Source: Trichosphaerium sp. ATCC 40318 (taxonomy: Eukaryota > Protista > Tubulinea). From it: a stretch of 64,000 bases of DNA. The notes below the pieces were generated by a model. That model ran no database searches. It saw only the letters and a list, made by a program, of their open reading frames with translations, and had not been told where the DNA came from. Location of the stretch: positions 62,001 through 126,000 of the forward strand of contig JALMLS010000013.1 of assembly GCA_038496445.1 (NCBI GenBank). Direction: 5' to 3'. Shown in pieces: positions 9,451-62,679 of the stretch. The number at the start of each line of letters is the position of its first letter. Position 1 is the stretch's first letter. The translations under genes were made by a program, and so were the position numbers.

Positions 9451-9533
9451 GCATGTTTGGCCGAGTGGTTAAGGCGTACGGTTAAGGTCCGTATGGGATT
9501 CGTCCCGCGCAGGTTCAAGTCCTGCAGCATGCA
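9451..9533 (+). tRNA. trnL-AAG: tRNA-Leu(AAG)
   Basis: GCATGTT/AGCATGC acceptor stem, D loop GAGTGGTTAA, anticodon arm TACGG-TTAAGGT-CCGTA, long variable arm, T arm GCAGG-TTCAAGT-CCTGC, followed by a T-run. Confidence 0.97.
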
Positions 9534-58591: not shown

Positions 58592-59101
58592 AACAAAAAA
58601 CAAACCAACAAAAAAAAAAACCAAATAAAAAAAAACAAAAGGAAAACTTTGCTTTTGGTTGCTTTGATATAATCCCTCACTTGATTGTTTTCAATGTATT
58701 GCTCTGATTTTGGGGTGGGTCAATCTCTTCCAGGATACATGTGATTTTGATGTAACAGCTATGCCAGGCACAGACATGGTTACAGTTGGTGATGTTTTAC
58801 GAAATGATGCGCACATAGCCATTTGAATCTACATATTAATACTATGTGCTAGGGGTAGTAGTGGTTAACCACAACATGTTGATGAAAATTGAGAATCTTC
58901 AAAAAAAAGTGTCATGATAATGCGTATGGATTGATTTAATTTACAAGGCTTGTGAATGACATCCTTATTGATCCTAGTTAACCTAATCTGGTAGCTTGTA
59001 ACTAAATTGTACTTCGTTTATGACGTCATTCGTACAGGTTTACTAAATATAGACTTTTTGTTCACAATATCTGTTATCCCTCCGCTCCACGCCTCTGAGT
59101 G

Positions 59102-60472
59102 ATGGAAACTTGCGTAATACGACTATCATGTATTCTTTTAGTCGTTTTTACTTTATCGCATGCTCAAATAACTGTAACATACCCTGAAGAGGTCTCTGGA
59201 GAATACGATGCTGTCACGATGCTCTTCGGGGTAAATTTAGAGTTTAATACGTTCACTTTCGAAAACGTCACAGCTGTCCTTGAAACAGCCGCTGATAAGA
59301 ACGGATCAATCGTTATTGCCAAAAGAGAGTCTCGGCCGTACTATATAGAATGGCTTGCTCAAGGTGCCTTGGCTATTATAGAAGCTAACGGACGTACAAC
59401 GCCATCGTTTGCGACATTTAGAGCTGAAAAAGAGGATCCTAAAATAGGAATAAACGCTGTTGTTTCAAATTCTGAATGGATTGACACGTGCTTTGAAAAA
59501 GGGTTTACGAACGTGACACTTTGTATAAGTAGTCAAGAGAACTTTTATAGAAGGTTTTATAAGTCTGCTTGGCCGTATGTTATATTCTTTATTCACTTGG
59601 GTATTCACATTGCTACTTTCTTTTATTTTATTTGGAGGCTTTGGATGGTCTTCAAAGTAGGTCAATGCAAGCTTCAGATTATGACTGTTGTTATGATTTT
59701 AGAGACAATAGGATGTGTACTACGTGTGCCACCAATGATATTGATTACATTGCTGCCACTGGCTATTCCATACTCTGGATTAGCTGTCACTTTGACTTTC
59801 AGTTTTGTCTTCACTGCGATAACTAATTTATTGATTATTCTTTATTGGCATGAAGTACTCCTAGAAACATCTCTTCAGATAAATCTGTTTCTGTCTAAGC
59901 TTAAAATACCATTCTTTGTACTCTGTGGGATATGTACGCCACTTTCCATGTTTTTTCTATTGTTGTAATTTCACAACAACGTTAACAAGCGTTTCCTCTT
60001 TTTTTCTTAAAGTTTCTTACTTTCTTATTAAGTGGTTGTGTTTGAACTTAGTGCTGATGTTACTATACTATTACTCCCAAGGAAGATACCTATGCTTGCT
60101 ATGGTCAAGAACAGTGTATACTCTTTGATAGCAATAGGATTGTTTGTTTATTGCTTAAGCGTTACTCTACAGCTTTATCGACTCGCTACTAAGTATCAAG
60201 ACAAATCTGTATCGCAAGGAGTTAGGAGACGTATTATCCAAACAATTGGTGCTCTCACTTTAATATTTGCGTTCAGTATTCTCTTGCTTGCAAACGTTCA
60301 GTATAAATTTCCGGCTGGGTTTTCACTTACATGGGCAGGTATATATTCATCCTCTAACCTACTTGGTATTGTAACTGTCATGAGCTTTCAGATTAGAAGC
60401 AAGCCAAGAAGAGTTTCATCCAGTACAAAGTCAAATGGAGACAGTACATCACATACATTAACTAAAGTGTAG
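59102..60472 (+). CDS. Seven-transmembrane receptor-like protein with signal peptide and PA-like ectodomain
   Basis: Signal peptide, ectodomain (GSIVIAKR, QGALAII), about seven hydrophobic helices, Ser-rich tail; one intron about 59934-60011. Confidence 0.65.
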
Positions 60473-60612
60473 TTTATTAGTTGACATTTGAATATTTGTA
60501 TGTAGTGATGTTGTACATGTTTAAAATAAAAAAAGCTTCATAGTTGCGAAGCCTATATGGCAAAAACTGGCTACTGTTGTTGGTTGTTCTGGTTTTTTTT
60601 TTTTTGGTGGGC

Positions 60613-60620
60613 TATAAATA
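60613..60620 (+). promoter_or_regulatory. TATA box of the permuted tRNA-like unit
   Basis: TATAAATA about 29-30 nt upstream of the first paired nucleotide (60642/60643). Confidence 0.55.
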
Positions 60621-60641
60621 GAACGATTAATGTAGTTTGAC

Positions 60642-60774
60642 AGATCCAATAGTAACTTCTCGAAAAACTAATTCTCAATCAATTAAGGCCCGGGTTCGAT
60701 TCCCGGTGGGGGGACTAAACCCCTCATGGTGTAATGGTAGCAAATACTTCTCTCCCGCAAGGGTTGGATCTTTT
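60642..60774 (+). ncRNA. Circularly permuted tRNA-like RNA (3' half precedes 5' half)
   Basis: T arm CCGGG-TTCGATT-CCCGG 60690-60706; acceptor 3' strand TGGGGGG 60707-60713; loop ACTAAA; acceptor 5' strand CCCCTCA 60720-60726; TG + D arm GTGT-AATGGTA-GCAA; AGATCCAA/TTGGATCT terminal helix; TTTT. Confidence 0.75.
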
Positions 60775-61026
60775 GTTTTAATGAACCAATAGAGTTTTAT
60801 CACCAAGTGAGCGTGTTGCAAAGTTGTAATACTTATTGAGTAATTTAACCTTCAAGAAGAAGATACGTGATTTTTTTGTAACGTAAAAAATTACATAATG
60901 TACACTGTTTACTTTTACAAGTTTTGTTTGTTTTTGTTCCTCTTAAGATATCTATTGTAATAGTTTTCAACTTAAAACCTGTTTCACGTTTTACTCTTTA
61001 AGACTTGTCTAAACCGATTCTAGCAG

Positions 61027-62679
61027 TCATACGTCTTTCAGTTCTTGGTGTCCATGGTTCGCGAATATTCCTGTTTGTTCTGAATCATGAATTAGCACTG
61101 AAGGTATACAAAAACCATTTTTTTAACAATGTACTTGAGTGTTGCTAAAAGAGCGATATCATCCTGAATATCACATCCAACCATTTCACCTCCTTCTACC
61201 TCACCAATACCACCTTCTCCCTTTTTAATCTTATAAATATCACGTGATTTTAATGAGGAAACACAAAAATGATGACAACCAAAAAAAAAAAACTTCAACG
61301 AACCTGAGCGATATCTTCTATAAAGTCTTGTACAACTTGACCTTTTTCGTCTACTACTGGTTGTAGTACATTAATCATATCTTGTGAAAGAGTCAATCTT
61401 GATCGATTAGCTGTACACTGTATGACTTTAGCTGCTAATATTTGGACTTTACGGTCTTGTGTTGTTGCTGATCCGTCTTGTGGAAGTATATTGTGTAATT
61501 CAGGTGTTATAATACTTGGGCATACAAATCTAAAAATAAAACGTTAGTATCAGCCGATTGAAGAAAAAAAACGTCAGAAAAAAAAACTGTTGCTTTAACT
61601 ATTTTTTTGGTATTTGTTTGTTTAGTCACTAGATCAAACGCTCAATGTGTTTAGTGAACGTTCCCACAATACTCAAGTACGTGTAGCATATTGTCAGGTA
61701 ATATTGTAGAAGTACAGTGTTCATGGGAGTAGAGAAAACGCTATTTTCAAAGAAGAAAACTGTACAAAAAAAAAAGAAAGTAAAAAGGCACCTTTGATTG
61801 TAAAATACCTTCGTTAAGAACGTACCTTAAGAAGAAGAAACCACTTAAAGCGCTAACTACAGCATCAGGAAATCGTTGATGAACAGCATCCTTAATCATT
61901 TTCATAATAAGCACTATACCTCTACAAACAGTCATAAGAAACAAGCGGAAGGCGAACTAACTCTTTAAGAGGTATGCGCTCCTTAACACGTACCTAGGCA
62001 ATTGATCCTTAGACGCAATGACACGGTCTAGTGTATCACAGAGTAGTTTAGCCAAATCGTCTAGGTTTGATGTACCAGTAGACCTCATATTGAGTATAGG
62101 ATCTGCTAACGTGTTCCGTAGATACTCCTGGTTTCTTTTGAAGCAAAAGTAGTACTTTAGGATCTTAGATGCTGAGCTGTTTCCTCTGAATATCGTATGT
62201 TTGTTCTCTAAAGGGTTTGAAGCGATTAGGATAGGATTTGATGTGATAGAGTTGGTTTTAAGAATTGAAGCCGATAAATCGCTTGTGACACTTTAACAGT
62301 ATGTAAAGCTGGTGCGTGGTAAGAGACTTATGTCGTACCTTTGGTCCGCTGTACTTCATGTTTCAAAACATGGTCAAATAACGCTACTAATTTACGTTTT
62401 CGCGCACAGACTCTAACTAGAGCTGCTAGATACGGTTCGTGCTCCGGTATTTTTAATAACTCAATTTGTTGAAGCACTGTCTTGAAATCAATAGTGTACG
62501 TATTCAAAGGAACCGGTTTACGCCGTTTTACAGGTTTCTTAGTCTGTTAAGTAAATTAGTACGTAAATATTACAATAAAGTACCTCAGTAGATCCGCGGA
62601 GTAGCCACAGTGCCGCTATACCTGCTATACTAGAAACTACAAGTACAACTGCCGTTATAGATACTGTAGAATGATCCAT
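61027..62679 (-). CDS. Small RasGAP-domain protein with N-terminal transmembrane anchor
   Basis: TIFRGNS (Arg finger), GFFFLRFVCPSIITP signature, AAKVIQCTAN; hydrophobic N-terminus. Confidence 0.85.

Follow-up and report, generated by a model that had tools for sequence, protein, structure and literature searches.

A putative permuted tRNA-like gene with Pol III-type signals in a probably amoeboid protist

Permuted tRNA genes, which encode the 3' part of a tRNA ahead of its 5' part, have been described in Cyanidioschyzon merolae, prasinophytes, the Bigelowiella nucleomorph and Thermofilum pendens, with published break points at 15/16, 20/21, 37/38, 50/51 and 59/60 (PMC3978253). Their maturation proceeds by cleavage, circularisation and reopening, the signals of the algal genes are a TATA box plus a T-run, and tandem duplication has been proposed as the source of the arrangement (PMC3978253). 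A second group of tRNA-like RNAs, the bacterial YrlA RNAs, carries the bacterial Y RNA motif GNCGAAN(0-1)G near the 5' end, and in the YrlA of M. smegmatis, which has a 7-bp acceptor, RNase P cuts and CCA is added (PMC4201824). YrlA has likewise been proposed to be dimeric-tRNA in origin, with leftover arms suggested to make the terminal stem (10.1101/312249). Reports of permuted tRNA genes, which rely on a bulge-helix-bulge (BHB), have come from a few algae and a single archaeon, and those of closed-acceptor mimics from bacteria and phages; within the incomplete coverage of our literature search, neither was found reported in an amoeba. Here we describe a locus that is, as judged from its sequence, a non-random permuted tRNA-like gene standing between these two known kinds, with a putative function.

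Position and layout of the permuted unit

The window (the whole stretch of DNA analysed, 64 kb in length) has a base composition of ~36% G+C and is eukaryotic, with short spliceosomal introns that were confirmed by contigs of a RasGAP-like gene. Next to that gene, in a ~420-bp gap between the stop of a membrane-protein gene (60472, plus strand) and the 3' end of the RasGAP-like transcript (~60896, minus strand), sits the permuted unit, the parts of which are listed here with both neighbours.

59099-60472, plus strand: orphan multi-pass membrane-protein gene, two exons
60613-60620, plus strand: TATA box TATAAATA, which may serve as an external Pol III promoter; the terminal stem begins ~29 nt further on
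60642-60649, plus strand: terminal stem, 5' strand (pair probabilities 0.73-1.0); transcript start predicted at or near 60642
60650-60668, plus strand: leader, mostly unstructured, without a Ro60/Rsr motif
60669-60685, plus strand: anticodon arm, positions 27-43 in canonical register, with a 5/5 A-U stem and a 7-nt loop
60686-60689, plus strand: variable loop of 4 nt, class I type, with C48
60690-60706, plus strand: T arm and B box, five G-C pairs, loop matching the consensus
60707-60713, plus strand: acceptor 3' strand (positions 66-72), followed by discriminator A73 at 60714
60715-60719, plus strand: intervening sequence of 5 nt, closing the acceptor stem
60720-60726, plus strand: acceptor 5' strand (positions 1-7), with C1-G72; 7/7 pairs, one G-U
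60727-60744, plus strand: U8 and G9, D arm and A box, and A26; D stem of three pairs plus G10·A25; A15
60745-60763, plus strand: trailer, a putative decayed second anticodon-arm copy, with a 3-bp GNRA hairpin at 60754-60763
60764-60771, plus strand: terminal stem, 3' strand, 8 Watson-Crick pairs with 60642-60649
60771-60779, plus strand: T4-G-T4, putative Pol III terminator
60896-62545, minus strand: RasGAP-like gene with five spliced introns (55-296 nt), confirmed by contigs of two runs

The original prediction of tRNA modules in permuted order was borne out to within one base, and the closed 7-bp acceptor, the TATA box, the pairing of the two ends, the T-run after the unit and the tetraloop hairpin in the trailer were all recovered; the modules had also been described as intact, and in this they fall short by a G10·A25 mismatch and by A15·C48. 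The architecture is confirmed as real, with a core far above chance: the pattern of T arm, closed acceptor and A box occurs at one site in the window, and 20 Mb of DNA simulated with matching dinucleotides contained no instance. Among the flanking signals, TATAAATA has 14 occurrences in the window (both strands counted) and would lie ~29 nt ahead of the stem start by chance with a probability of roughly 1e-3 by our arithmetic; T-runs are common in window DNA, and T4-G-T4 is weak evidence by itself; and a terminal stem of 8 bp is modest when taken alone (stems that long were found in 126 of 5,000 shuffles). The folding energy of the whole unit is unremarkable (z of -0.36 to -0.93). Pair probabilities of 0.7-1.0 were obtained for the terminal stem, T arm, acceptor hairpin and GNRA hairpin, the D stem is absent from the predicted fold when tertiary contacts are left out, and the anticodon arm folds weakly (0.13-0.18). 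From the variable loop through the D arm, the T to D region has 58% G+C and its T and acceptor stems are perfect; the anticodon arm has 18% G+C.

An AATAAA of the upstream membrane-protein gene is found at ~60525, and because it precedes the TATA box at 60613 the unit is unlikely to be a 3'-UTR element of that gene, for which the homolog search gave no homolog and which has zero contig coverage in the probable RNA runs. In the contigs of four runs, none extends over 60572-60895; the contigs seen nearby are those of the RasGAP-like neighbour in spliced form and some short pieces of DNA that end at 60571. The two runs with the spliced neighbour look like mRNA libraries, the probable poly(A) contigs of which would miss such an RNA, and the missing coverage of the permuted unit therefore says little. 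The only ordinary tRNA in the window by ARAGORN and Rfam is tRNA-Leu(AAG) (9451-9533, plus strand). No TATA box lies within 60 nt upstream of this gene, whose anticodon stem starts TAC and finishes TA, as does the putative relic arm of the permuted unit. On the minus strand at 60533-60554, just upstream of the putative promoter, an 8-bp hairpin is followed by a T-run, probably by chance.

The rejoined cloverleaf and the trailer

The register of the anticodon arm, an arm missing from the original prediction, was found by counting backward from the T arm across the 4-nt variable loop, and its loop holds C32 U33, the anticodon CAA (60676-60678) and U37 C38. The chance of a stem with Y32 U33 at this place is 0.0009 if judged by shuffling the leader and 0.0034 if judged over all positions of the window, figures that become ~0.01-0.02 once the handful of alternatives examined is allowed for. 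Since positions 27-28 are identical on either side of the break, the break is placed at 26/27 to 28/29, and the permuted unit is, on the letters of the DNA, a complete cloverleaf permuted at about 26/27. Three other joins were rejected: at a 41/42 junction, a 5-bp stem needs a 9-nt loop and C37, and the fold is ~11 kcal/mol poorer; a 37/38 junction gives anticodon CUC, a C·U mismatch and C37; and Gly(CCC) joins require extra nucleotides ahead of the stem. The body of the unit looks Glu-, Gly- or Gln-like, each of these being a candidate for the parent isotype.

When rejoined, the tRNA has U8, G18G19, U33 and U54U55C56, and lacks R37, a 10-25 pair and a complementary 15-48 pair. Its four defects (U37, an anticodon stem without G-C, G10·A25 and A15·C48) were compared with a benchmark of 865 distinct ordinary tRNAs from phage and bacterial loci, which is a prokaryotic and phage set and not an amoebal one. 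Position 37 is a non-purine in 20 of these tRNAs, 10-25 is unpaired in 46 and A15·C48 occurs in 31; an anticodon stem free of G-C occurs in none. Two of the four defects are found together in four tRNAs, and three in no tRNA of the set. At the permuted unit as it stands, no ordinary tRNA was called by ARAGORN or Rfam. In a tRNA scan of the re-permuted sequence, which the original prediction had proposed, ARAGORN accepted the best rejoined form with a score of 112.8 (121.2 for the ordinary tRNA-Leu of the window), but it also accepted about half of the trial joins (316 of 622), which makes its call on the rejoined form weak.

Eukaryotic tRNA-Leu has a long variable arm, as does the tRNA-Leu(AAG) of the window; in the permuted unit, the Leu anticodon CAA stands on a class I body with a 4-nt variable loop. 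Reassignment of the UUG codon was considered and rejected, since the TTG codons of window genes sit on conserved Leu positions and no codon reassignment is therefore evident. With these features, the rejoined molecule is probably not a working tRNA. As had been noted at the outset, no BHB is visible either: in canonical geometry, the 4-bp central helix lacks at least one pair at every junction from 21/22 to 43/44, and all four pairs at 26/27-28/29. The known route of cleavage, circularisation and reopening is therefore without its entry signal.

The trailer resembles parts of the tRNA that lie elsewhere in the unit, a likeness that the original prediction had likewise passed over. The eight bases after position 26 are identical in register to seven of the eight bases at upstream positions 27-34, and are followed by a CUC triplet and C37; further on, 60761-60769 matches T-arm positions 51-59 at eight of nine bases, a match that is not significant alone (p ~0.13) and becomes so only in combination with the in-register match. 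For the whole second-copy alignment (positions 27-59), p is 0.002-0.013 when anchored at its start with a free end and ~2e-4 if its end points are chosen. The T-loop relic of this apparent second copy coincides with the 3' strand of the terminal stem. These matches give moderate support to the view that the trailer is a decayed second copy, left by head-to-tail duplication of a tRNA with loss of its outer parts. The search for a relic of the tRNA 5' half upstream of the permuted unit gave a non-significant result (p ~0.4). A collapsed tandem of two tRNA genes, raised in the original prediction as a refuting case, thus survives in part, as an origin, in the form of a decayed second copy in the trailer, but not as two ordinary intact genes: the two complete normal-order cloverleaves of an ordinary tandem pair are not present.

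Two further details of the unit were recorded. The leader holds a third near-copy of (A/T)ACTTCTC (60654-60662, plus strand), which lies 15 nt ahead of the anticodon arm and may reflect local duplication on a small scale. After A73 (60714-60719, plus strand), the linker reads CTA-AA, a single base off CCA plus two A, and is compatible with a retro-copied tRNA that had been circularised and CCA-tailed, for which it would be weak evidence.

Readings of the permuted unit

We lean, at somewhat better than even confidence, towards a stand-alone gene for a TATA-driven, non-decoding Pol III tRNA mimic. Such a gene would have arisen when a single tRNA or tRNA-like gene was doubled head to tail, 5 nt separating the copies; positions 1-26 would have been lost from the first copy, the second would have decayed past position 34, and the T-loop relic of the second copy would now pair with the leader, closing the molecule. 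Because the A and B boxes are inverted, the polymerase would be recruited by the upstream TATA box, starting near 60642 and stopping in the T-run, and would produce a non-decoding RNA of ~130 nt shaped like the elbow and top half of a tRNA. In its fold, the terminal stem, T arm and acceptor hairpin would be stable, the D arm would rely on tertiary contacts and the anticodon arm would be marginal. As there is no splicing-endonuclease site, neither circularisation nor religation would be expected; RNase P may still open the 7-bp acceptor, which comes with a normal T arm, at a site predicted at 60719/60720, and trimming and CCA-tailing could then yield two pieces that stay joined through pairing in the acceptor and terminal stems. 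In what is the least supported step, the elbow and acceptor would be shown to readers of tRNA shape (modifying, end-processing and uncharged-tRNA-sensing proteins), and the RNA might serve as decoy or tether in the manner of bacterial YrlA, through convergence and not descent.

Between the two possibilities first offered, a permuted tRNA or a YrlA-like mimic, the mimic fits better, since the rejoined molecule departs from tRNAs in four features that are nearly universal among them; the uneven decay, with T and acceptor stems perfect and the anticodon arm eroded, also counts for it. Counting against it are the lack of a contig over the locus, the empty homolog search, which leaves no covariation, G10·A25 and A15·C48, which weaken an elbow that a mimic should keep, and the retained 5/5 anticodon stem, which is superfluous to a mimic. 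That same stem, with its C32 U33, favours a true permuted tRNA gene that gives a working tRNA(CAA), whether by BHB-independent rejoining at 26/27-28/29 or, once RNase P, RNase Z and the addition of CCA have acted, in the form of a two-piece tRNA left unligated, as do the filling of each cloverleaf position in register and the ARAGORN score of the best join; we nevertheless consider this decidedly improbable in view of U37, the all-A-U anticodon stem, the 10-25 and 15-48 mismatches, a Leu anticodon with a 4-nt variable loop and no evident reassignment, the missing BHB and the permissiveness of the ARAGORN call. All four structural defects, of which two lie in the elbow, would also suit a relic in decay, either silent or transcribed without function, that began as a tandem or retro-copied tRNA or was copied from another permuted gene of the genome, and the second-copy remnant in the trailer, the lack of any folding-energy excess, the empty homolog search and the absence of a contig over the locus point the same way. 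We regard this leading alternative as unlikely, however, since erosion is seen in the flanking copies but has spared the T arm, B box, A box and 7-bp acceptor, all of them G+C-rich, and since a TATA box at the right distance, the 8-bp terminal stem and the T-run coincide at a locus in a window whose ordinary tRNA-Leu gene has no such box. Rather improbable, too, is the broader proposal that the permuted unit belongs to a eukaryotic family of permuted tRNA-like RNAs that do without splicing; some members would perhaps be charged or decode, and the family would span stages from tandem tRNA copies to YrlA-like mimics.

The least probable reading, and in our judgement a very improbable one, is a genuine Y RNA, inherited or acquired from a bacterium or phage, in which an amoebal Ro60 would bind the terminal stem and the tRNA-like domain would tether an effector. 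The YrlA module order, similar size and paired 5' and 3' ends all agree with it, the 5' strand of the terminal stem matches the animal Y RNA motif GGUCCGA at 5 of 7 positions, and closed-acceptor units with the same D/T motif are found near TROVE genes (see below). Against it, the terminal helix is fully paired and unbulged, and GGUCCGA in a bulged terminal helix, as in animal Y RNAs, is absent; so, as first reported, is a visible Ro60 motif, with no GNCGAA(N)G in the permuted unit and the nearest approach (CTCGAAA(A) at 60659) outside the terminal stem. The Levitt pair is a non-complementary A15·C48, where the YrlA criterion is A15-U48 or G15-C48. The Rfam YrlA (RF02553) and Y_RNA models, which the original prediction had singled out, gave no match to the unit at E up to 10, while a positive control for the YrlA model, the metagenomic unit L050, scored 6.9e-05 (30.6 bits against a cut-off of 69, and thus itself below the gathering score). 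No TROVE/Ro60 gene was matched within the 64-kb window, although eukaryotic Y RNA genes need not adjoin it, and no near-identical DNA was found in metagenome, viral and prokaryotic collections. By family criteria, then, the permuted unit is not a YrlA or Y RNA, but it may work like a YrlA. The further suggestion of a new class is not established, the homolog search being empty and no contig extending over the locus.

Comparison with tRNA mimics and permuted tRNA genes

A loose D/T pattern, modelled on the permuted unit, pulled 120 metagenomic loci, among which any likeness in D/T sequence is circular because the query pattern came from that unit. Ninety-nine of the matches overlap ordinary tRNAs, none of them with a 7/7 cross-acceptor; 21 do not, and 12 of these 21 have one. 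Two closed-acceptor units lie within ~0.6 and ~3 kb of TROVE/Ro60 genes, and U48 is present in 12 of 15 metagenomic closed-acceptor units. A perfect in-register anticodon-like arm was found in 4 of 15 closed-acceptor units (metagenomes and phages; 0.31 expected); one of the four has a Ro60/TROVE gene 0.6 kb away and obtains a score with the Rfam YrlA model, and none of the armed units that were scanned at the Rfam gathering score was called YrlA. With YrlA-type units that combine a closed acceptor and an anticodon-like arm, the topology of the permuted unit thus also occurs among YrlA-type RNAs. The arms precede the variable loop and read GCA, GTC, GTC and TGA (L050:4161-4296 on the minus strand, L001, L044 and L101, respectively). 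Phage and bacterial YrlA-type units often look like a whole tRNA permuted at about 26/27; in published YrlA work, the same arm region is described simply as a variable stem-loop. Two closed-acceptor contigs (L085:3109-5427 and L117:1025-2587) carry DUF2828/DUF7788 or VWA-domain genes and no recognised TROVE gene, and these genes are possibly divergent Ro60-like partners.

Other tRNA-derived RNAs offer partial parallels. The mascRNA and menRNA have the normal order and are cut out of Pol II long RNAs; the permuted unit resembles them as a putative eukaryotic tRNA mimic without a functional anticodon arm and differs in its permuted order and its own TATA box, and its score against the Rfam mascRNA/menRNA model is at chance level (E of 1.4-3.9). 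As with two-piece (permuted) tmRNA and permuted rRNA, its product could act as two unligated pieces after processing of the acceptor end (PMC3978253). Unlike tmRNA, it has neither a tag reading frame nor a tmRNA body, its two-piece processing is hypothetical, and the tmRNA model is touched by the T arm only.

If the permuted unit is merely a relic, its significance is modest; if it is expressed and processed without splicing, it would represent a second way for eukaryotes to use permuted tRNA genes. In either field duplication is the proposed origin, and here a relic of tandem duplication is apparently retained, its T-loop reused as a closing stem, which makes the duplication-origin model directly testable. 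Like permuted tRNA genes, the permuted unit encodes the 3' part ahead of the 5' part, has a short intervening sequence (5 nt, within a known range of 1-74; PMC3978253) and combines a TATA-like box upstream with a T-run downstream and pairing between leader and trailer. Unlike them, it breaks at ~26/27, which is absent from the published list (PMC3978253), its exon departs from the tRNA consensus (U37 and G10·A25), a BHB is found at no junction, and its host is an intron-rich, probably amoeboid protist. With YrlA (RF02553), it shares the succession of T arm, closed acceptor and D arm, a terminal stem closing a molecule of similar size, a hairpin upstream of the T arm and, with the YrlA of M. 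smegmatis in particular, an acceptor of 7 bp; it differs in a terminal stem that is short and unbulged and in signals of the eukaryotic Pol III type. Both also bear apparent traces of dimeric-tRNA origin, and in the permuted unit, as in the dimeric-tRNA model of YrlA, a leftover arm would pair as the terminal stem (10.1101/312249).
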